A DNA stretch of 64,000 nucleotides from Magallana gigas (taxonomy: Eukaryota): assembly GCF_963853765.1 (NCBI RefSeq), contig NC_088857.1, forward strand, positions 15,438,001-15,502,000, given 5' to 3'. The notes beneath the pieces were generated by a model. That model did not search any database, had not been told where the DNA came from, and saw only the letters and a list, made by a program, of their open reading frames with translations. A program made the translations under genes and the position numbers. Of this stretch, positions 46,630-61,800 are shown piece by piece (the stretch's first letter is position 1; the number at the start of each line of letters is the position of its first letter).

Positions 46630-46667
<38 letters not shown>

Positions 46668-46764
46668 CGACCCCCCCTGGAAAATGAAAATTTATTAAAT
46701 TTACATAGTAAAATTATCGCAAAAATATGCCTCGGACCCCCCCTGGCAAACACAATTATCCTTC

Positions 46765-46798
<34 letters not shown>

Positions 46799-47417
46799 AT
46801 GCAATGATTAAAAAAAGTACATCATGAAAAAAATCAAGCTTTTTTATTTTTTCCAGACCATACCGGAGGTTAATAAAACCATGCAATTTAATAAGAATAT
46901 GAAGGCAGTAAAATCTATATAATGCATGGGGTTCATTCCCCAGATTTGATGTTTAAAAATTATATTGAAAATTCACCAAGTTATATATTTTTTTATGAAG
47001 GTCACTCTATAGATACCGGGTAATAAGACTATATTTGTCAGTGGTATATTTAATCAATGTGTAAAATATTCATTTCAAAATATTTCTTAATAAAGGTTTA
47101 TTGTTAATGTCTTTAAAAATATTAGCAATATTTGTAACTGATAAAAATTAATTATCTTATCTTCAACTTAATTCGGTCATAATAATTGTAATGGTACATT
47201 CAACATGTTCAAAAAGGTTCACCTAATTTCAATAATTTTGTTTAAATTAGTTTTCATCTCATGAACCCATGAGATTACTCCATTATGATTAAAAGTAGAC
47301 ACCTTATTTTTTCAATACTAAAATTTACAGATATATAATCTACTTGAAGCTATCAATGCATTGATTAACATTACAGAAATCCTGTTCATCAACTTACCCT
47401 TCGTAAACGTGACTCAT
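29179..47417 (-). CDS. ERICH3: Glutamate-rich protein 3 (DUF4590 domain plus long acidic C-terminus), ~1997 aa
   Basis: Exons 47417-47398, 45013-44920, 44594-44397, 41128-40988, 39396-39199, 38873-38733, 37780-37576, 37300-37114, 36977-36847, 36735-36619, 36053-35976, 35343-35275, 33593-29179 (5994 nt, phases match). N-terminus MSHVYEGPLATYNSLTDRNLSGYFSNTRMRRHLRKAGL...LAQAIVHKSLDMER and QQHCGGNTLTVFKENLKPGDTFSFISRRHRGFPFSL...CCEYKH...PCYKC match ERICH3/C1orf173 as recalled. Confidence 0.9.
45930..45971. repeat. (CT)n microsatellite in ERICH3 intron 1
   Basis: Direct reading, with one interruption. Confidence 0.8.
46632..46802. mobile_element. GC-rich MITE (171 bp) with a 3-bp AAT target-site duplication in ERICH3 intron 1
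   Basis: AAT|GCATGCGCGGATC(T)AGA ... TCTGGATCCGCGCATGC|AAT; internal GGACCCCCC(C)TGG repeats. Confidence 0.85.
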
Positions 47418-48410
47418 TTTTACTTTATGCGTTCGTATAAATTGGTTTCATCAATCCATGTCTCGAAATTACTCCATCATTATGGGAAAAACTAGGAACA
47501 ACAGTTTTCAACACAGCTCGTCGCCGGGGTGAACCACGTGATCAAACAAAGTGCGAGATTCCCGAGTGCTCTCTAGACTTTACCATTCACATACCCATAA
47601 ATCCTGTTTCCGAAATTACGGAAGTTGATAAATAATCTAAAATCAGACATCACTCATTCGCTGTATATATATAATCCCGGAAAATATAAAGGTTAAATCG
47701 TGTTTTGAATATATGAATAAGTGTTATTTATGTTAAACGAAAACAATGTAAACAATTAATAAAAAATAATCACTACAGAATAAGGAAGTACATCAAGAAA
47801 AAAAAAGAAAGAAGAAAATTATTTTACTTCGTAAAAGGTTTTTTCTTTTACTCACATCCGCGAGAGTTATTATAGTAGTACAGTCCACTATCTTCGCACC
47901 AGCCTAAGCACCATCCCCATAGGGCATGCGCGAAGGAAAGATGGGTCATGCGACATGCGTACTTCCTTCTTTCTGTTTTGAAACATTCAATTTCAAACGA
48001 AGAGGTATTTTTTTCTTAATTTGTTTTAATGACAATACCATATTATGGTAACAAAATTTGTTTGAGAATATAACCAAATGCAAAACTCATTTACTTTTCT
48101 TTGAAAATAAACCCAATCGGATTTTTCTCAAATATTAAAGGGGAAAAAATTGGCGTCAACCTCGTACGTATTATATAACCCTTTCTATGATCGATTTAGT
48201 CCTACCATATAATGGTAAGCACACCACAGAATTTGCCAAAATTAAATTTTAATCACTCTGGACCTGATATGTGTCTGCAGAGGGATAGGTAATGTCAGGG
48301 ACGTATATACTAACGATTGTGTTATATATGTCTCTGGTAATGTTCACTATTCAATTTCAAGAACTGTCTATTGCAGATTATAATCGGTGTGTCGTAGTAT
48401 TAGGAAAAGT

Positions 48411-51400
48411 ATGGCCAATGCAAGTAAGTTTGTTGGTTTTATCAATTAACCTATATACGAGCATCATTGTAGCATACAAACAATTTTTTGCATTACCAAA
48501 AGCGGTATACATTGCTACATATGATTGGCTGTTCGTTCGCCCTAAAAAGCGCTCGCCCTTGACGCCGTTCGCTCTAGTTTCCGCTACATATGGCACGTCA
48601 AATTCACAAAAATAAGTTAAACATAGTTTTACAGTCGATAAACTAAGCTTAACGATTGTAAACTACATTTTAAGGACAGAATTCTATAGTTAACGATTTA
48701 GTTAACTTTATTTAACACCCTTAATCTATATTTCACATATGTTAACTATAGTTAACACATTCATCTATGTTTCAGAAGTGTAAAACTACCATTAACACGG
48801 AACACGGAACCATTTGCGATTGCAAAACATAATTTATCTGATAAATATAGTTTCACAATTGTGAAACTATGATTAACAAGTCTGAACTATAGTTAAGGAA
48901 TGTAAATTATAGTTTACAGAAGTGAATCTATATTTATCAGCAAAATCTATTGTTAATGTTATTTGCAGACAGATAAACTTAGATTATAATCTGTAAACTA
49001 TAGTTTACATCTGTTAAATGTGGTTTTGCAGATGAAGACTATAGTTAACTGATCGTTAATTATAGTTAACAAATTGTTAACTATAGTTTGTGGTTCGTAA
49101 AGTTATCATTCGATAAAGGTAGTTTATTGACTCAGACTGTGAAACTATGTTTAGCTCATTTTGTGAATTTGGCGTGCCATAGCTACAACCCTTTCCCTAG
49201 ATGTTTTCCTGTCTTTCTTCAACCAAATTGATATTTATTTCCCAGGAAAACACTAGCACCACACCTATTTGATATCTATAACACTAGCACCACACCTATT
49301 TAACCTCTATAACACTAGCACCATACATATTTAACCTCTATAACACTAGCACCATACATATTTAACCTCTATAACACTAGCACCATACATGTTTAACCTC
49401 TATAACACTAGCACCATACATATTTAACCTCTATAACACTAGCACCACATATATCTTAGCTTTATGAAACTAGTACCACACATATTTAATCTTATAACAT
49501 TAGCACCTTACATAGCCTACCTCTTTCTCACTAGCCCACACATATCTTTAAAATATTAGCACCATACATATCTAGCCTTTTTAACACTGGCACCACGCTT
49601 ATCTAACCTCTATACACTAGCGACACACATATCTTAACTCTATAATGTTAGCACCACATATATTTAACCTCTATAAAATTACTACACGCATATTTAACCT
49701 TTATTACACTAGCACCACACATAACTTTACTCTTTAACATAAGCACCACACAAATTTAACTTCTTTAACACTAGCACCATGCATATCTTACATTTGAACA
49801 TTTTCACAACACATATCTTACCTCCTTAACACTAGGGCCAAACAATTATCTCTAAAACACAAGCACCACACATATTTAACCTCTATAACACTAGCATCGC
49901 ACATATTTTTAAACCTCTATAACACTAGCACCATACATATCCAACCTTTGTCACACTAGCACCACACATGTATTATCTCTAGAACATTAGCACCACTCAT
50001 ATTGAACTTCTAAATATGAACATTTATTTAAAGTTGATGTATTTCATCTACGTTAAGTTGAGTTATTTTTTTCATTATTTTTCTTAAAAAGAAATTGCTT
50101 TTTATTCAGTTTGCACTATAATTATTTATATAATGTCCAAACAGCTGTACCAATTTTAATCGTTTTATGAAGAAGAGTCCTTAATTATTCGAGCCCTTGA
50201 AAAAATTTTCATATTGAAAGCTGTTAAAATCTACACGTTGAGTCAAACTTTGTTATCTCGAACTAAATGGGGCTGTCTAAAATCTTCAAGAGATCTGAAT
50301 ATTTGAGATATTGAGGGTTAATTACTTAAAAAATAACTGATTGATACTTACAAATCATTTCAACATATCCTAGTATGTATTCGAGATATCAATGTCTGAG
50401 ATTTCAAAGTTCAACTGTATAAGTTTATGCTTAGATAATGTAATTGTTTCTATATAAATCTAATGAACAGCATTTATTTGCTCGCCTTGAAACAAGATAT
50501 TAAATGATATAATATCTTTTATTTTAATTAGGTTTAACCAAAGTTAATGAGCAGTACTGGGCTTCAGTTCAGGGCAAGGTAATGCCAGCATGTTTGCCAT
50601 AAATAATATTATAGGTTTTATTGCAAATCAATTTTTTTTTCATAGTTAACTATGATTAATAGTTAATAATAGACTAATTAAAAGAAGAAAATTGTATGCA
50701 TTAGGATTATTAACAGAGGGCTAGCGCTACATAGTGATTTATGTAGTGATGACTGTGCGAGACCATTCATGACAAGTTTGAAATTTTGATTTGCTTTTAA
50801 CTTGTACATCATTTCATTATCTAACATGATTTTCAAAGGAAACATATACGGGAATAAATCTGTTGAATGTTTTTATTACTGGGGTCATAGTGTTTCTTAA
50901 ATATTTATATCTTGCATTTTTAAATCAAAATTTCCATAATTATCTTTAGTATTATAACTACTGTATTAGGTTAAAGACTGGATTCAGAAAACAGATGCCA
51001 CTGTATTAGTTTTGTACATACCCCAGCCAACAAAGCGTAATCCTATCCCTACTTTAAAATTTGAAGGTAAGTTTTATTTTGAAAATATAATTTGACACAA
51101 GAGTCAGTTATTCTTTTATTCATTGATGTACCGGTATAAATGTATTTACCGGTAAATGTAAATACATATACATGTACTTAGTGTAAGAAATAAGCATTTT
51201 GATGATTGACAAAATAAACTAAGTTTATTTCATTTTTTATACACATTTTTTGTACATGTTTTATATTTTACTGGAAATACATGTACATTTGCTTAAACAT
51301 GTTTACTTTGTAGGGTCAAGAAAGTTGAAAGCTGTGGTAGAGTCAGAAGAAGTGAGGAGTGCCATCAGTACAGCTTGCAGCGGTCCCCCCCCTCCTGTGA

Positions 51401-52774
51401 AATCCTTCAAAGATGGTGAGTAATACATGTACAGAAAGATATTTTTATTCATTGAATAAGAATCGAGGAAATGTCTTTAAACATTAAAATAAAAACTCTT
51501 TGACATGAAAGAAAATAACAGATATGCTTTTTATTCAGCTAGTTTTCTTTTCTTTTTTTTTTGTATGAAAATTACCATCTGGATGGGTTTTTTTCGCCCC
51601 ATGTAATTATTTTCTTTTTGGGAGTTGATTTTAATCAACTTTCCCATGCAGTTACTCAGACAAACCGAAAGTGAAATAGTGTTTGGACCTTGAAAATGAT
51701 TGATGAATTCGATGTAATGTATGCTAAAGCATTGTTTTTCAAGGAAACTTATTTATAAATACTTTGAAATAAGTCAGATTTTAAATGTTACGAACAATTT
51801 AAATATTTTTTGAAATTTTCACCCTGACTTGAATTCACACATACACAGGTTTTTTTTAAAGAGAGATAATTTGAAACATTGGAATTCACCCAGTCTTAAA
51901 TTTACCAGCTGGCAAAGTTGGGTGAAAATAAAATGAGTGTGCAAATGCTTCCCTGTATACAATATATCCAATATTTTAAATGAGTTTTTATCACTTTCAC
52001 AAAGTTGTTAGTGATTGTATTTTCTTAATTCAGAGATGGTGAACATAACCATACAGCCCTGGACTATGCAAGTGAAGAGGTGTATAATATCTAACTTGGT
52101 TAGGCAGTATAGTAAGTAAAAAAATCCTTAGAGAATCATATTTATTTTTTATTACCCACTCATGCAACTTGTTGTAAGGGGGGTATAGCATCTCATGTAT
52201 ACATGCATGTATTTGGTCTTCTCAATTACATGTAATGCATTTCCCTCCACAATATTTCATTTTGCAAGGGGATGCTCTGCATTGCAATGCACTTGTTTTT
52301 TAATCTATTTCTATATCATTTTTTTTTTTTGTGTTATACTGGTATAAACTTCAAAATCTCTTTATAGTGGAATTGAAGTATGGTAAGAAGAGAGACATTT
52401 GGGGTTACCCTTCCCTTAAACCAGAGTGGTGGCCTAATGGCACTGACTTCATTTCCCCGAATGAAAGACGGACTGTCGGTAAGATTAAGATTAATTTTTA
52501 ATATCTAGTAGTTTAATTTTACTGGTGTGCAATTTATCACCTTTTTTTTTTACCTCATCCCTATTTGTAGGTAAATACAGATTGTACCAGTCCTGTATAT
52601 TTTTTGTTGTCCTTTGTTGTATACTAGTTGTTTGCTTGAGGCGAATGTGTAAGGAATATGAATTTATGTTGAAATCTCACCTATATAACTTGCAACACAT
52701 TTTCCTTGATTTTAGACAAACCGTTGAGTAATATAAGCATGGATCAGATTCTTGATTCATACGTAGAGTGGAAG
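48411..52774 (+). CDS. Divergent NRF1/EWG-type DNA-binding-domain protein (at least 169 aa; last exon not resolved)
   Basis: Exons 48411-48423 (ATG, in-frame stop upstream), 50532-50578, 50970-51066, 51314-51415, 52034-52111, 52368-52478, 52716-52774; phases match. VLVLYIPQPTKRNPIPTLKFEGSRKLKAVV and LKYGKKRDIWGYPSLKPEWWPNGTDF parallel NRF1 as recalled (IVLCISPSKPNPVFKVFGAAPLENVV; LKYSTGRGKPGWGKESCKPIWWPEDIPW). Confidence 0.65.
48589..49181. mobile_element. MITE family A, copy 1 (~590 bp)
   Basis: TATGGCACGTCAAATTCACAAAA ... TTTTGTGAATTTGGCGTGCCATA inverted termini; internal GTTAACTATAGTTAAC-type palindromes. Confidence 0.8.
49249..50005. repeat. 31-bp minisatellite, about 24 copies (unit ATAACACTAGCACCATACATATTTAACCTCT)
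   Basis: Near-perfect 31-nt period at 49280-49450, degenerating towards 50005. Confidence 0.9.
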
Positions 52775-53882
52775 GTATTGGAATGATGATTTTAAGAGTT
52801 AACATGCCCTGAAAATTTAGAATTTCTAGTTTTTAATCATTTGATTGCACGATAATCAGGAGTTAAGAAAAATTTATTGTGGGTGGTTAGGGGTGTTATC
52901 AGTAACACAAAAATTACCTGTTCAAAACAGATACACTGTAAGTACATGTATTTATTCTAAACTCTAAAGATTTATTTTTCAGTATGTTATGTAAATGAAA
53001 TGATTATCTTGCAATCTTTTGAAAAATTCATTACAAGTAGTTTAGTTCATCAAATATTTGTAAGTGAAAGCAATTTATTTGAAATTTATATTCATTGGTA
53101 ATTGCAATGGATATACATGTTTAGTTATTCATGAATAATGCTAGAATTGTCTTGAAATTTCTTTATAAATCAACATCTTAAAATTACATGTAATACATGT
53201 GTTACAATTGGCAAATAAGAGGCAGGCAAGTTTCAACCAGGACTCATATCCAAGGCCTCCAGCATACCATGCCAAGTGCTATAACCACCAATCTAATGCA
53301 ACCTATATATTGGTTGACTTTTGCTGGCCTGTGAACCTGGTGACACATGTATTTTTAATTTTAACATAGGAAAAAATAAATGATCATATGTGACAAAATG
53401 AATTTTGAAGACTTTAAGCCATTTAACTTAAATATTACATGAGCATTGACCTTCTTAGTACTAAAATGCATGTCCTGTTTATGCTGCAATACCCAACTGT
53501 ATGTCTGGCAAGCATGTAATATGAAAATTCTATGGAACGCCCATTATCAATATTGCAGGGTTGTCTCTAAGAATTTAAGTTTTATGTATATCTGTATAAA
53601 AGGATGCAACTGTAACAGTAAACAAAAATCAGTGTGACTGGTATAGGATATGGTTAAGTTAACTTATATGTGTATATATTTTAGAAGCACATATTTTCAT
53701 ATAATACAACAACTACCAGGTATTGCTACTTTTACATGTGTCATTAATGGCATTAAGGTGAATATATGTATTGTACTTCAAGGTGGATAAATCATATCAT
53801 ATTGACTGGAACTCCACCCGAACCCCCCCCCCCCCCCCCCCAAATGATATTTAAATATCAATACATAGCTTATAACATATAC

Positions 53883-56705
53883 CTTTTCTTGTGTACAGGA
53901 ATTTTCTTCACTGTAACGATGATCCTCTACAATCAGACACATTAAAGAACTTAACACATAAATCTATATTCCACAAAGTTTTTGTATGTAAAGTATATGT
54001 AGAAAGCTTAATTGTAGATATAACACAATGACATGGACCAATATGCAGGGTATTCTAAGATTAAATGATGAGTTTTATTATTATACAAAGGTTGAACAAT
54101 GTTATTTTAAGTGCATAGTCAAAAGTGAAAGCTAAAATTCATGCTTGTGCATGGCAATTACCGTGGCTCTTCCATTAATTTGAACTTATCCTTATACAGT
54201 ATTTTGGGGGCATAATCACATTTGCAGAAAAGGCAAGAAGTTTAAAAAAATACAAAAGAATTGAATCATAATTTTTAACACAAAATTTTAATCAGTTTGT
54301 ATGATACACAGTATAATTCAGTTATGAGACTATAATCTTTCAAAAGTTTATCATAATTCATTTTCATTGTCTTTGCATGAATATATATATCAGATACCCA
54401 ATATCAAAAATGAAGTACATTGTAGTCTGTAGATATTAATCAAAATTTCATATTAAGCAATCTTCTTTGGTGTTAAAAGTTTCCTTACAGGTCTTTCATA
54501 GATGCATGTAGCCATGAATGAACCATTACCTGAAACAGTAATCTCCTCAGAATTCTCTTCAACACTGTAAAGATTCTTAAATTTTCTACAAAGCTCTTTA
54601 GCAGCTTCAACATGTATACATCCTGCATACAATTCCTCTACATCTGAAATGGAAAAATACATATAATCATCATTGAGATGGTGACCATCTCAAAGGACCT
54701 AGCTTGCTTATAAACAAAAGATATTAGAATAAAAAGCATTTAAAAAGACTTGCTTTAATTTTAATAGGCATGCATCTGTGCAAGATTGGGCTAATGAGAA
54801 AGAATGTGGTGGCTCAATTTTCGTGGAATAAGTGCATGGGTACCTCTCATCCACGAATCAACATCCTCCAAGAATTAATTAAATTAGGGTAATAAAGTCA
54901 TATTTCCTTTGTAGATTTTAGAGAATACACAAAATTATGTCGATCCCACGAACCTATAAAATTTTAGCAATCCACAAAAATTGGCCCCCACGAAATTTAA
55001 TGATTCCACATTATATCAGGTATGACCTTCACATTTGACCAAAAGTATTGTTCAAAGTCCATATAAACCCATTACCTATAAATTATGTTCATGTAAAATT
55101 AGTGCCAATATGGCTAAGGGGAAAAGTACATGAATATGATCTGAATTTTTTTTTAATTTTACCCAATGTGACCTTGACTCTTGACTTAGAACTCTCTTCA
55201 AGGTTAATACACACCCTTTTACCAAGGGCACTCTGTTGGTGAAGAATGATTCATATTGGACCTAGGGGAATTAAATGATATATAATCCAGAAAAGGATTT
55301 TTCATATAATTCTGCTATAACCTTATAACTTTAAACCATAAAACTTAATTGGTTATAGATGGGTGTGTGTGAAGTATGAGACAAATTTAGCAAAGGAGAG
55401 AAAAAATATGCTTCAAACGAGGACAGACAGAGGGATGGACACAGACGGACTGATTACTAAAGGGTGCCTGCTGAGCGGGGTCCTAATAATTCATGTAGCT
55501 GAAATGACATCATGATTTTGAACATTTCTATTCAACTTTGTATTTCAATTAAAAGATGAAATTTACTTTGAAAATTACTTTGACTATAATATATAATATT
55601 TAAAACATAAATTTTCATGATTATGATTTTTTGAAAATAAAAACATGTAATTATAATTTTAAAATTATGGAGTTAATTGGACTCATACCTTCAGAGGTGC
55701 AAGATCGAACTTTGTTCATGAAATAATGCCGATCTGAGTCACAAGAGCAGGCGTATCCCAACTGTGGCATTTTTTGCACAATTATAGGTTTGACGTTCTA
55801 AAATTGAAATTTAAATACTCCTTAACTTAATTGATAAAAAACATATTCAATCTGCATGCAGCAATCAATATAGAGAACAAATTGGTTGTCATTAGTCTGT
55901 GTAAATATATATAACGAACAGATTGAATTTAATATTTTCATTGAAAATTTAGGAAATACAAAACTAGATTAATTATATAACAATTAATTAAGTTAAGAAA
56001 ACAAGAAAAATAAGTGAATGTAATAAAGTCTTTACACTGAGTGTTTTGTCAGTTGAATTCCAATCCATTAAGGCACACACTTCAATATTTTTATCCAAAA
56101 AAACACATCCCCTGCCTTGAAATATAGAAAATAAATATAATCTGCAGTCCTCTGAGCTTTCCCCACCGATTTCCAAAAAGACATCACCACTCAGAGGCTG
56201 GATATTTTGATGAATTTCAGAACTTGCAGTAGAATTTTCACTTCGGTGATAACTTGATGGCGGCCTGTCAGTAGAAGACGCAGTTTCCTAAAAATGAGAA
56301 TATAAAATCCCCTTTAAATAACTATATAAGGGAAAAACTCATAATTCTTTTATTCAATTTTTAAATTACAAGTCCATATCGTAAATGCATGTACTGTATA
56401 AAGTAAGAAATTTATCTAATGAAATAAAAAGCTAATTACAGCTTTTCTTGATTTAATTTTGGTTGAGGCACTTGAGGGTTTCCAGGGACGTCTCTTGGTT
56501 GGAAGTTTGGAAAAGTCCAATCCACATTCTCCCTGTACAATGAATCTTTTCCTCCAGTTTTCCACTGTAGGTTGAACCCTCTGTTTTAAAGAAAATTAAA
56601 GTATATGATATAAATAACATATAAATACAGATAATTTTTAAATACACTGTACCTCCAGGATTAAAAAAAAATACATACCTTTTTTTTAACATCTTTAGGA
56701 TCCAT
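53883..56705 (-). CDS. SWIM-type zinc-finger-like protein (CxC...CxH), probably an N-terminal fragment of a transposon-associated protein; 3' end unresolved
   Basis: Exons 56705-56679, 56580-56440, 56287-56036, 55797-55689, 54643-54530, 53926-53883; phases match. MDPKDVKKKRVQPTVENWRKRF...GYACSCDSDRHYFMNKVRSCTSEDVEELYAGCIHVEAAKELC... Confidence 0.6.
54805..55012. mobile_element. Degenerate MITE-like repeat (TGTGG..TCA...TGA..CCACA termini)
   Basis: Imperfect inverted ends resembling the 7701-7906 family; TCCACGAA-like internal motifs. Confidence 0.4.
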
Positions 56706-57176
56706 TTTAGATTTTGGAGATTCTACATACGGGATTGAAGACTTGACAAGTCTGCAAATTCTTCTGTGTAAATTAACAGTACGTAAATTTGTGATTTATT
56801 GATCTAAGTGATATATATTATATTATCATGGATAAAATGTAAAATGTAAAATTCATATATTTGTAGATGCCTAATTAAAGGCAAGGGGTTCACATCTAAG
56901 TAAAATCACGAGAAGCATATATCTTGCAGATTTAAAATTATAAATCTCTTTAATATGAACATGCAGTATGTAAATTACACATGTGTGATCTACTATTATA
57001 GCTGATATAAGTAATATAAATCATGGATAAAAATTTAAAAATTACATATTCTAGAATCTGCAAAAAAAAATGACATGGCATTATTTACATCGCATCCAAT
57101 ATATTATTTTCATTCCAAAATGATAATTTAATGCTTAAAATATACACCCTTAATCACTGAATATTGAGATTATATC

Positions 57177-58366
57177 TATTGCATGCCAAATTAACAAAAC
57201 CAAGCTAAACATAGTTTCACATTTGATAAATTTGGTTTATTGACTGGTAACTATAGTGTTATGAGCAGCAAACTAATAGTTAACAATTTGATAACTATAG
57301 TATTCATCTGTAAATTTATATTTAACGATTACAATAGATTTTGCTGATAAATATAGATTCATGCACGTCTGTAAACTATAATTTACATTTGTTAACTATA
57401 GTTAAGAGTTGTTAGTCATAGTTTCACAATCGTGAAACTATATTTATCAGATAAATTATGTTTTGCAATAGCAAATGGTTGTTTTCAGTCTTAATTATAG
57501 TTTTACACTTCTGAAACATAGATACCGGTAATAGCGTTAACTATGGTTAACAGATGTGAATTAATATAGATTAACTGCGTTAAATAAAGTTTCAAAGATG
57601 ATAAACTAGATTTATTGACTGTTAAGTTTAGTTTAAGGATGCTAACTATCGTTAACAATATTTGACTGTTAACTATAGTTTACGAACCGTTAATTATAGT
57701 TAACGATTCATTAACTATTATATAGTTAATGATTCATTAACTATAGTTAACGATTCGCTTACTGTAGTTTTCATCTGCAAAACCATATTTAACGGTTGTA
57801 AACTTAGCTAGTTTCGAATGAAAAATCTAAGTATATCTGTCTGCAAATAACGTTAACGATATATATTTTGCTGATAAATATAGAGATTCACATCTGTAAA
57901 CTATAATTTGCATTTGTTAAGAGTTGTTAATCATAGTTTTACACTTATCAGATAAACCATGTTTTGCAATCACAAATGGCTGTTTCCAGTGTTATACTGT
58001 AAGTTTATATAATATATATATAACCCCTCTGAAACATAGATGATCCCGTTATAACTATATGGTTTACAGATGTGAATTACAAATTTTCGTCATTAATAAT
58101 AGTTTTCTGTCCGTAAACTATAATTTATAACCGTTAAACCTATAGTTTATCGACTGTGAAACTATAATATTAGCTTACTTTTTTTATCTAATAATTTATA
58201 TAACCCCTCTGAAACATAGATGATCCGGTTTACAGATGTGAAATACAGGTTTTGTCGTTAATAATAGTTTTCTGTCCATAAACTATAATAAATTCATAAC
58301 CGTTAAACCTAGTTTATCGACTGTGAAACTATGATTAGCTTATTTTTATTAATTTGGCGTGCCATA
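57177..58366. mobile_element. MITE family A, copy 2 (~1.2 kb, internally duplicated), inverted relative to copy 1
   Basis: Termini TATTGCATGCCAAATT ... AATTTGGCGTGCCATA. Internal 57340-57560 is the reverse complement of 48700-48950. The block TAACCCCTCTGAAACATAGATGATCC occurs at both 58021 and 58201. Confidence 0.75.
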
Positions 58367-58744
58367 TACCCCCCTCCCCCCGAGACGTCAAGATCGAGGG
58401 CTGGTATGATGATTTAATGATATACAGCAACCTCGGGCTAATATAGGATGCGATATAAAATTTGCCATGTAGTAGGCCTAATCTAAAAATATTTCATTCA
58501 TAGTATACGAAATATTTTACCTGTATACCTTAGTTACAAATCATTTTTGCTCTGCTTGCAATATTTCCAGGTGAAACCGACATGTCAAACTGAGATACAC
58601 AGATACACCAATACCTTCCTTTTCAATAAAAAAAAATATACGCTTAATTATAAGTATATATATCAGCGGTGAATTTATGGCATTAATACACAGGATGTCT
58701 AGTAAGGTTAACGTAAAATGAAAGCGGAAAGTAAACAGAATTTG

Positions 58745-58755
58745 GCGCATGCGCA
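58745..58755. promoter_or_regulatory. NRF1 (alpha-PAL)-type palindrome GCGCATGCGCA, about 60 bp upstream of the HACD ATG; a weaker copy is at 47922-47932
   Basis: Matches the established NRF1 consensus TGCGCATGCGCA at 11/12. Confidence 0.55.
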
Positions 58756-58813
58756 ATGAAGATGGTGCTAAGGCTGGTGCTAAGATAGTAGATTACACTA
58801 CTATAATACCTCC

Positions 58814-61800
58814 ATGGCGACGCCAGGGAAAAAAGCTCCGACTCAAAGTCCAGAACCTGAAAATGGTCTATCTGTCGCGTATCTTGTTGCTTACAATGTG
58901 TTGCAGATGATAGGGTAAGATAAATATGAAATATTTGTTTCATATTTGCAATGTGTAGCATTATTGATTTATTCTGTGCTGAGTGTGCTCCTTTGAGATT
59001 TTAGGGGAGGGTTGCTCCCTGGGTAACAGTCAAATCGACACATGTTCATTTAGGCATTTACACATCTATATAGTCAATTCGGTACTGAATGAAATAGAAA
59101 AAAACTGTCAAGTATAATTAATTATTTTAAAAAAAAATGCATTTAAGTTTGCATCTATTGTTGGATGAAAGATGACTTGGAACAGACCAGGATTTAAAAG
59201 TAGGACTGGTCTTAATCTATAGTCAAGTAATATAACAACTCAGCTATCTGACGATGACAATTGAACCAATTAGACTGTCACATTCCTCCCAGCTATTCTC
59301 TTTTGAGAAGTGGACAGGCATAGCCTACATCCATGTCTCTTCGCAAGCCCTCATATTTTAAATTGATTCTGGAAAACGTGTAAATGTGGGAACCAGAGAC
59401 GGTTTAGGCTTCGACCAATATTTCGACTCCAGTTTCCCTATATTTTCGTAAAGACCCATTATTTCTTCATTTTAAACATTAATGCATGCATATATCAAAA
59501 AACAACACTAACCTGCTGTCTGTACTTCTAATTGACAATTCTAGTAGATTAAACTGAACCCAGCTAATGCTTGTTGGGGTCATCTTCTGTGATATGGTTC
59601 ACTTTTGATATCCAATCTGTGTCTTATGCCCAGGTTGGTTTCAGTGTAATATTTATAAAGCTAAGTACATGTATATACTGAATTAACTTGAGAATGCTAT
59701 ACTGTGCATGTACATGTATCTTCATAAATGTAAAAGTGGGATTAATTCTCTCTGAAAGAGTCTTTGTGTTTTCATTGTCATTCATCTTATTTTATTTATT
59801 TCTAGATGGACACTCTTAATGTTTAAATTAGTCTATCACATGGCCTTTGAAAAAACTGTTGCTGGATTGTATGACGAAGTCGCAACTTTCCTGAATATTT
59901 TTCAAACGGCAGCAATTTTAGAAGTAAGTCAAGTTATTATACAGAAATTTCATAAATGTGATGTGCATTAAACAGAATTATGCATTCCATTTTTTTTTTA
60001 ATGTGTGATTTTTATATTTTTTTTATTCACCATTTGTTATTTTTTAACTACAAAGTTTCCATGACAAAATGAAGGTTATTTTAGAGTTCTTTGATTTAAT
60101 ATGCACACTGATTTTGCAAACCACAAATTATTGGTGAGAATTTGTTCAAATATTGAACTGCTGTATCCCTGGTACTTTTTCAACGTACATGTAAGATTGA
60201 ACATAATATAGACAAAGTGTAAAAAGATTTATTGCTGTACTTCACTGAACCTGTGACAGATTCTTCACTGTGCTCTGGGGTTGGTGCGGTCCAGTGTGGT
60301 GCTTACAGCCTTCCAGGTGTTCTCCAGAGTTTTTCTCACCTGGGCAATTACCTACAGTGTTCCATCGGTAAGTCTTATGATTACCTTTATCAATGGCCTA
60401 TTTTACTTTTTTGTACATTACAGTACGTGTATTAGAGATATCAGTTACTGGTGACTTAGTTATTTGTCATATTTACGGTACTTGGGAAGTCTTCATGTGC
60501 TTTTGAAAACTGTCCCTTGCCAAGTCTGTCTATTTCTATCAACTGGATTGATGATTTATTGGGACTGTATTGGGACATTAACTGAAAATATACTTTTGTT
60601 TATCAGGCTGCCAAAGTAAAAAGTATTCTTTGCCACAATTTATGTACTATGATGGATAATGTCAATTCGCATGATGAAATCATAAACAAATATTGACTAA
60701 TTCTATTTACAGTCTCAAAGTTCCTATGGGGTCCTGTTGTTTGTAACTGCTTGGACAATCACGGAAATCATCCGATATTCATTCTACTTTTTTACACTAC
60801 TTGGAGGTGTCCCATATCTTATTGTATGGTGTCGGTAAGTCTAGAAGTTGTATGCTGATATACATGTATGTACAGGTATTACGGATACATGCAGTTGATT
60901 ACTCATTCAGAGTTTGCAGGTGTACAGTCTTATCTGTGTAATAGTTAGATCATATCTTATTTGCATATATTTTATTTAATATAATCTAACTTACTTAGAA
61001 CATAACCCACTTTTTCATTGGCTGATCAAACGTTCTGCACCAATCAGACATTATCTCTCTTTTGTTTATGACTCTCTTAGCTCTCAATCGAAATGTGACT
61101 TCGCCTTCAATTTAGAGAAATCCTTAACGATTAAAAACATCACTTAATAAAATATTTAGCAACTGCTGATTGGATGAAAAAGTGGGTTATGTTCTAAGTT
61201 TGGGTTCAAGGGGGTTTAAATGAACTAAACTGCTCAAGCAGTTCCTTTATTTTCCAATACAGCTATGGAATGGATTGCCTTTAAATGTATATTTACTCAT
61301 GAGAAAATGCCCCAAAAAAAATGTTTCTTTGCAATTCTGCTCCTAACCCCACTCGTACAGTACACATGCATACACTCAGGCCAAAATGAAATTTTGTTTG
61401 TTTGGAATTGCCTCCTGCCTTATTGAATTATCCCCTGCTGATAAAATTTTATGTGGAGATTTTTATTTGTTTTACCAAAAAAATTCCCTCCCTCCCTACT
61501 GGACCTAGAAACCTCTAGGCAGCAATTTCAAACAAACATTTTTTTAAGGTTGGCCTCATGCTTCCATTACCCCCTTTGTGACTATGTTTGTTTTTATGTC
61601 TGATTCTTATCAATAAAACTTGAACATGTAAGCTCAATCAGATTCTATTGAAATGTAAATTTTTTATTTCAGGTACACCTTCTTCATTGTCCTGTATCCC
61701 ATAGGAGTAACAGTAAGTATGAAAAAAGAATAATCCTGAATATATCTATTTTTTTTTTAAATTTTAAATTTTTTATTATGACAATAATACAATAAAAAAA

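Follow-up and report, generated by a model that had tools for sequence, protein, structure and literature searches.

An oyster DNA transposon that encodes a remote relative of NRF1 and carries NRF1-type sites in its terminal repeats: a putative case of self-recognition

Could a mobile element encode a protein of the transcription factor type that recognises the element's own ends? Some transposons are known to bring along an accessory protein of their own that binds DNA sequence-specifically, the Myb-like protein of Harbinger elements being one example. The question is raised here by a 64-kb stretch of the genome of the oyster Magallana gigas (G000:C5:15438001-15502000, hereafter the window; coordinates are positions in it unless another contig or locus is named). 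Within it, a 10.95-kb DNA transposon at 47864-58812 (the C5 copy) encodes a protein remotely related to the transcription factor NRF1, and carries a site of the NRF1 type on the inner side of each terminal inverted repeat. A sequence-only reading of this DNA had proposed that the two may form a self-binding circuit. We consider putative self-recognition of the repeat ends by the NRF1-like protein to stand at about even odds (roughly 0.5), because the homolog of a factor and the palindrome of that factor are unlikely to meet in one element by coincidence. That the protein retains the TGCGC specificity of NRF1 and binds these sites is something we infer rather than observe.

The element is bounded by two inverted repeat arms of 71 nt each, found by a repeat search and 83% complementary when aligned (47864-47934 and 58742-58812; Table 1). 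A search of the same genome (564 Mb) returned two other loci whose similarity starts at exactly 47864 and runs to 58812-58815. There are three reference copies with identical termini and unrelated flanks, namely the window copy, C7:14278193-14298136 (19.9 kb) and C8:21757919-21776794 (18.9 kb), and a right-end fragment of the element on C4. The 16-nt terminus GAGKTATTATAGTAGT has no further occurrences in the genome beyond chance. With the element taken as GAG...CTC, the C7 and C8 copies are flanked by perfect direct 8-bp duplications (CTCTGAAT and CATAGTTA, respectively). For the window copy the duplication is imperfect: ATCCGCGA and CATGGCGA match at 4 of 8 positions, or at 7 of 8 (CAT..GCGA) if one indel is allowed. 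A whole, colinear element is also found in Saccostrea cucullata (locus L063, 9912-26073, 16 kb), which was reached by a protein search through LOC134254398 (P0019). There the left repeat, all exons of the NRF1-like gene, a 31-bp satellite in the equivalent intron, the minus-strand gene, arrays resembling miniature inverted-repeat transposable elements (MITEs) and the right repeat follow one another between unrelated flanks that form a perfect 8-bp duplication (TAAACCCA). Between the two genera the element's non-coding DNA aligns at 70-78%, against a synonymous divergence (dS) of 0.60 for the gene. The sequence-only reading had recognised an element here, as the target duplications and the non-reference insertions bear out, although its span of 47868-52774 takes in the left repeat and the gene only, the right arm lying about 6 kb beyond 52774.

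Evidence of recent mobility comes from the RNA libraries of other oysters, in which contigs link the left terminus to flanks that are uninterrupted in the reference; the corresponding empty sites are C7:49345037 and a helicase-like repeat present in four copies. A Logan RNA contig, L065, begins at the element's first base, covers exons 1-7 of the NRF1-like gene and then passes, through a canonical acceptor, to five exons belonging to a C3 gene (G000:C3:7712294-7721422). This chimeric transcript implies a non-reference insertion upstream of the C3 gene. Together with the left-end junctions, likewise read in contigs from RNA libraries, it indicates that insertions of the element vary between individuals and give rise to chimeric transcripts. 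There is strong support for reading 47864-58812 as a copy of an oyster cut-and-paste DNA transposon that is low in copy number, was recently active and makes 8-bp target duplications.

The sequence GCATGCGC occurs five times in the 64-kb window against 0.24 expected. One copy (47924-47931) belongs to the left arm, whose inner end reads GGGCATGCGCG (47921-47931), and two overlapping copies at 58745-58754 make up the site in the right arm, whose inner end reads GGCGCATGCGCA. An NRF1-type site at the inner end of each repeat had been claimed, and one is indeed present in both, the right being a perfect palindrome, GCGCATGCGC, and the left falling short of it at one position in ten. The right palindrome is the sole match in the window to YGCGCATGCGCR at one mismatch or fewer, against 0.03 expected. 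By our estimate a perfect 10-mer would arise by chance in 142 nt of such composition with a probability of about 1e-5. The site is placed identically in both arms, within the inverted repeat, and the similarity of the arms ends directly inward of it. Other copies have also retained it: both sites are kept in the C7 copy and in the C8 copy, where the left reads GAGCATGCGC; the C4 fragment keeps the right site; and in Saccostrea the right is perfect and the left weakened to GGGCATGCGA. The motif core GCATGCG is invariant in six of six aligned arms from two genera, as are the terminus and a 20-nt block, GCACCAGCCT.AGCACCATC. The remaining two occurrences of GCATGCGC (46632 and 46795) form the inverted ends of a small element, about 170 bp long (46632-46802), that has no relationship to the 11-kb transposon. 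Its ends begin GCATGCGCGGATC and enclose G/C-rich 31-bp repeats.

Reads and contigs from four RNA runs were placed on 47800-53799, and GT..AG joints in the contigs of three runs and in raw stranded reads define exons 1-7. The contigs of three assemblies, like L065, start at the exact first base of the element. For all joint reads of the raw stranded run the first mate lies on the minus strand, which in most such libraries denotes plus strand RNA. The reading frame opens in exon 2, at 48411; the ATG at 50547, at which the sequence-only reading had placed the start, is out of frame. Downstream of exon 7 the contigs either continue unspliced to 53580 or are joined to 29 nt that are absent from the genome (runs X1, X3 and X10; no match in the window or genome at up to 2-3 mismatches, and hence not placed). 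In both cases an in-frame stop follows within 2-10 codons, so that the product (P0018) has about 151 aa. Read in frame, the 29 nt resemble the beginning of the Saccostrea tail exon, which is acidic and Ser-rich and absent from all three reference copies. The 169-aa product proposed earlier is obtained if exon 8 is included, and that exon is conserved (19 of 20 positions), but none of the four RNA runs contained the joint 52478>52716 that leads into it. Over the 169 codons shared with Saccostrea, 148 residues are identical and dN/dS is 0.12, from which we judge that the encoded protein is under purifying selection. The gene DNA at 50565-53570 is unique in the genome, and there is therefore no parent host copy. 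Intron 5 includes a repeat resembling a short interspersed element or MITE (51615-51812); it has many genomic copies, about 80% identical, and is covered very deeply in every RNA run, with word depths reaching 20,000.

Is the encoded protein truly a relative of NRF1? Motifs colinear with the NRF1 DNA-binding domain had been noticed in the sequence, and the searches of the PDB agree. In a phmmer search of all PDB sequences, P0019 matched human NRF1 alone (8k4l_A, E 2.3e-4, residues 59-178). A profile of seven family members matched 8k4l_A at E 1.8e-6 over 124 profile positions and 8k3d_A at E 3.7e-4, and beyond human NRF1 nothing in the PDB fell below E 0.5. For exon 7 alone the two best PDB matches were NRF1 (E 0.12 and 0.4), and Pfam returned a weak NRF1 match (E 0.066), second behind an unrelated fungal family; no other single exon gave an NRF1 match in Pfam. 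A Smith-Waterman local alignment to oyster NRF1 covers 120 residues with a Z of 7.9 relative to shuffles. The AF2 model of the protein is of low confidence (pLDDT 54.9). With this poor model, Foldseek placed 8k4l and 8k3d at the top of 350,000 chains (E 3e-3, probability 0.92, TM only 0.28-0.30), and VIA-align gave the DNA-binding domain Z values of 5.9 and 5.5 for the NRF1 entries, with the next match at 3.3. The kinship to NRF1, judged on these comparisons, is remote but supported. In other searches, exon 7 retrieved nothing but fragments from a representative library, a word search with P0002 returned only itself, and the contigs bearing P0001 and P0006 are too short for genomic context.

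NRF1 makes its base contacts through R206, N242 and R244, and its dimer reads two TGCGC half-sites (PMC10810270). In the element protein the R206 equivalent is retained, TMQVKR aligning with T201-R206, and SPN is invariant in the family. A homodimer through the N-terminal half is predicted, with a score of 0.64 against 0.01 for the best control, a partner pLDDT of at least 62 and agreement between runs on at least 37% of contacts; the predicted interface comprises residues 10-43 and 60-78 of P0019:28-215. Among eukaryote proteins the mark used for such homodimers is reached by 17 of 29 solved as one-chain pairs and by none of 30 solved as single chains, although the pass may reflect the model's memory of 8K4L. 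The protein begins at about NRF1 residue 105-110 and is without the N-terminal nuclear localisation signal (NLS)/basic region. Pfam detected no further NRF1 domain in P0019, and the NRF1 activation domain is absent.

These findings can be assembled into a scheme. The transposon holds two convergent genes, a plus strand gene for a small NRF1-family protein and a minus-strand SWIM-finger gene by the right repeat. The NRF1-like mRNA starts at the left repeat and encodes a protein corresponding to the dimerisation and DNA-binding halves of NRF1. The sites at the inner sides of the repeats would most likely be control sites near transcript starts, at which NRF1-type dimers bind. A probable binder is the protein encoded by the element itself, and its binding could lead to autoregulation or to marking of the ends, alongside or in competition with host NRF1. 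Competition at the flanking promoters, a further suggestion of the sequence-only reading, is possible.

NRF1-like genes are not confined to this element family. An 11-kb unit is present in three copies (G000:C2:18091307-18102379, loci L072/L073; C2:59304891; and C4:6847051), of which two were compared at full length and are 99.98% identical, and one runs into a stretch of N. Each unit contains a paralogous NRF1-like gene (P0020/P0017) that is 23% identical to P0019, and its start, GGAGGTATAATAGTA, resembles the terminus of the element studied here. A tandem cluster with at least four exon-7-like motifs (RGFWGIASLAPKWFPEGVPF.SP) lies at G000:C7:5672998-5676515, and a partial locus positive for the Pfam family Nrf1_DNA-bind (PF10491) at C4:1685566-1685715.

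The copies of the element differ in their interior. What all three reference copies share is limited to 2.1-2.7 kb on the left and 3.8-5.2 kb on the right, and the idea that all of them carry the gene had to be rejected, exons 3-8 being found in the window copy alone. In the C7 copy, 50565-55040 is replaced by a tandem Penelope-like array with reverse-transcriptase-like open reading frames (ORFs). That array (L028:5935 to L029:5988) consists of two complete units and partial ones, with ORFs of 671 and 247 aa that match RVT_1 weakly; it is Penelope-like by arrangement. In the C8 copy, 50004-53570 is replaced by a 5-kb satellite and 6.4 kb of single-copy DNA. The satellite is the 31-bp satellite of the intron, expanded to about 5 kb and in inverted orientation. 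The C7 and C8 copies each have more in common with the window copy than with one another, and the window copy also has the internal order seen in Saccostrea, which makes it the closest to the conserved form.

The single-copy DNA of the C8 copy also provides the only candidate for the enzyme that moves the family. On its minus strand lie the ORFs of a gene of several exons that is colinear with Mytilus californianus LOC127734717, whose protein (P0013) weakly matches KDZ (PF18758) at 18.3 bits (E 0.0019, cut-off 26.6). The oyster ORFs themselves gave no direct match to PF18758, and one of them resembles KDZ clusters of the ESM Atlas at 0.88-0.90. The weak KDZ signal, taken with the 8-bp duplications of Zisupton elements, makes a transposase of the KDZ/Zisupton type the best lead, although the Pfam test failed. 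No transposase was found among the ORFs scanned in the window copy. The C8-type candidate gene is absent from the window and Saccostrea copies, and no copy combines an intact NRF1-like gene with a transposase candidate. The MULE and hAT classes were considered and rejected, as the ORFs scanned contain no supporting domain.

Several of these results, and others, weigh against self-recognition. Pfam matches to Nrf1_DNA-bind are below the gathering cut-off of 23.5 bits for both P0018 (14.6 bits, E 0.027) and P0019 (14.0 bits, E 0.041), and a six-frame scan of the genome with PF10491 flagged two canonical NRF1 genes and the partial C4 locus but not the element. The match to NRF1 envisaged earlier thus stands in so far as the PDB profile, Foldseek and VIA-align all rank NRF1 first, and fails at the Pfam threshold. 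Equivalents of N242 and R244 (in SPNER) require a two-residue loop insertion, whereas the ungapped HMMER alignment gives S and N at these positions. The dominant RNA form in the runs examined ends after exon 7, without the last helices of the DNA-binding domain. At the DNA level, the left site departs from the palindrome, and in Saccostrea neither of its halves fits the consensus. That the motif is conserved cannot count as specific evidence, because the entire repeat is conserved and not the motif alone. Furthermore, no GCATGCGC lies within 20 kb of the paralogous 11-kb element; this second family weakens the general case for self-binding, yet shows that NRF1-like genes recur in such elements. 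Finally, NRF1 sites are common in ordinary promoters, and host NRF1 alone could explain those found here.

That last point is the core of the main rival, a tentative reading that we consider less probable than self-recognition: the sites would recruit canonical NRF1 for transcription of the element's genes, and perhaps of the adjoining host gene HACD, while the element protein differs in specificity or acts elsewhere and the motif match is coincidental. The host has two canonical NRF1 genes to supply the factor. The mRNA begins at the left repeat with the site about 60 nt inside exon 1, a placement shared by many NRF1-type promoters, and about 60 nt separate the right site from the HACD ATG downstream. 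The uncertain N242/R244 equivalents and the paralogous element without the motif fit the same view. It leaves unexplained why an NRF1 homolog and the NRF1 consensus should meet at both ends of one element, which is improbable by coincidence as only a minority of promoters have such sites, and why the R206 equivalent and the WG..KP.WWP block persist in the protein, together with a predicted dimer interface like that of NRF1. An unlikely alternative holds that the NRF1-like dimer serves transposition only, helping the transposase to find or pair the ends from the inner edge of both repeats with no transcriptional control. Accessory DNA-binding ORFs have precedent in Harbinger/Nuwa elements and in MULEs (PMC12730594, PMC6446971), and the second, Myb-like protein of PIF/Harbinger elements offers a parallel. 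The equal placement of the site inside both repeats, the purifying selection on the protein, and the existence of two diverged oyster elements with similar termini, each with an NRF1-like gene, would suit such a role, whereas the separation of the intact gene from the transposase candidate and, again, the lack of the motif in the paralogous element do not.

Two further readings are less likely still. It is improbable that motif and gene have no functional link, the motif being chance or relic and the gene a passively carried fragment of a host gene. Elements of this kind do lose and gain internal DNA, as the C7 retroelement array and the C8 satellite expansion illustrate, and exons 3-8 survive in only one of three reference copies. 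But in a second genus the element still holds the gene at a dN/dS of 0.12, with the exon structure preserved and even the intronic satellite in place; the genome holds no parent copy elsewhere, and the motif core does not vary in six of six arms. More remote still is the notion that the copies are segmental duplications and the inverted repeat a duplicated promoter, for which the window copy, lacking a clean duplication and abutting a host start codon on its right, provides the only encouragement. The perfect 8-bp duplications at three other copies, similarity that stops at the same base in every copy between unrelated flanks, and non-reference junctions that match empty reference sites speak against it, and we rejected it on the strength of the target duplications and the empty sites. 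Self-recognition by the element's own protein is the reading we prefer.

Table 1. Coordinates of the features of the transposon and its flanks in the 64-kb window.
Feature	Position	Strand	Remarks
Left flank of window copy	47856-47863		ATCCGCGA
Left terminal inverted repeat	47864..47934	+	Terminus GAGTTATTATAGTAGT; identity with C7 and C8 copies begins exactly at 47864; terminus invariant in Saccostrea
Exon 1 (5' untranslated region)	47864..48004	+	Joint 48004/48377; L065
Left NRF1-type site	47922..47931	.	GGGCATGCGC; 9/10 of GCGCATGCGC; within exon 1
Exon 2	48377..48423	+	RNA joints; start codon 48411 (MANAS...); exon also in C7 and C8 copies
Nested MITE-like inverted-repeat element, intron 2	48588..49181	.	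Own 23-nt inverted ends; hundreds of genomic copies
31-bp satellite array, intron 2	49241..50035	.	Equivalent Saccostrea intron holds the same satellite (L063:11046-14423)
Exon 3	50532..50578	+	RNA joints; L065
Exon 4	50970..51066	+	RNA joints; alignment with NRF1 dimerisation domain begins here
Exon 5	51314..51415	+	RNA joints
Exon 6	52034..52111	+	RNA joints; TMQVKR aligns with NRF1 T201-R206
Exon 7	52368..52478	+	RNA joints; WG..KPEWWP..SPNERR motif block
Exon 8	52716..52774	+	DKPLSNISMDQILDSYVEWK; 19/20 identical to Saccostrea exon in P0019
Convergent minus-strand gene	54528..56595	-	Conserved exons ~56595-56437, 56200-56030, 55797-55678, 54683-54528
MITE-like repeat array	57177..58367	.	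Inverted relative to 48588-49181; also in Saccostrea
Right terminal inverted repeat	58742..58812	-	Element end ...ACTACTATAATACCTC
Right NRF1-type site	58745..58754	.	GCGCATGCGC; 10/10 palindrome
Right flank of window copy, putative target duplication	58813..58820		CATGGCGA; includes ATG of HACD/PTPLA host gene

In the right half of the element, the minus-strand gene shows 62-77% amino-acid identity to Saccostrea by tblastx, and a 129-aa gene is called at that place in the Saccostrea sequence. A SWIM-type CxC...CxH motif is split over its last two exons; a regular-expression search for SWIM fingers within single exons found none. The element ends 1 nt before the ATG (58814-58816) of the HACD/PTPLA gene, which matches PF04387 at E 6e-11 on two exons (region 58813-60835). 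The position of the element end next to this ATG means that the HACD gene has been severed from its former upstream DNA, and it may now be transcribed from the right repeat of the element.

The element resembles several known systems in part. With NRF1/EWG/P3A2 (PF10491; 8K4L, 8K3D) the protein has in common the colinear dimerisation and DNA-binding halves, the WG..KP.WWP block, an arginine at the R206 position and the predicted homodimer of the N-terminal half, and the element has the cognate palindrome GCGCATGCGC in its own ends. It differs in that the protein is about 20% identical, below the Pfam cut-off, 151-278 aa long and encoded inside a transposon, lacks the NLS/basic region and activation domain of NRF1, and in Saccostrea has an unrelated acidic, Ser-rich tail; its intron positions also differ from those of the oyster NRF1 genes. 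Like PIF/Harbinger (Nuwa), the element is a DNA transposon with a separate gene for a sequence-specific DNA-binding protein besides any transposase, but Harbinger elements make 3-bp duplications, have short repeats and use a Myb/SANT fold rather than NRF1, and no Harbinger-type transposase was found in the oyster element. Zisupton elements make 8-bp target duplications (PMC12730594), and the weakly KDZ-like minus-strand gene of the C8 copy is a second point of similarity; however, the KDZ match does not reach the Pfam threshold, that gene is missing from the window and Saccostrea copies, and the known accessory genes of Zisupton (for example fungal TET/JBP) are unrelated to NRF1. Mutator-like elements, such as MuDR and the arthropod Spectre, share long repeats with promoter activity, duplications of 8-11 bp, extra ORFs and SWIM fingers. 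MuDR carries a pair of genes (mudrA and mudrB), and Spectre has 74-bp repeats and 8-bp duplications (PMC6446971). Unlike these, the oyster element has no MULE DDE domain in any ORF scanned.

In the literature searched, no paper links the NRF1 domain to a mobile element. What coincides at this locus is a young, polymorphic element, an NRF1-like gene conserved across oyster genera (dS 0.6), an NRF1-type palindrome in both ends, and a left end that is also the start of the mRNA. This makes it a simple and directly testable case of a mobile element that plugs into, or mimics, the network of a housekeeping transcription factor. The chimeric host transcripts and the position directly before the HACD start codon suggest that the element may rewire host expression through the same sites. 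A broader proposition, which we put forward as speculative and rather doubtful at present, is that the NRF1-type module is a standing accessory protein of 8-bp-duplication transposons in oysters and perhaps more widely, one whose targets would be sites like GCGCATGCGC on the inner margin of the repeats and which would couple transcription or transposition to the NRF1 regulon. If true, it would raise the question of a shared origin of the NRF1/EWG family and this transposon module, by capture or by domestication.

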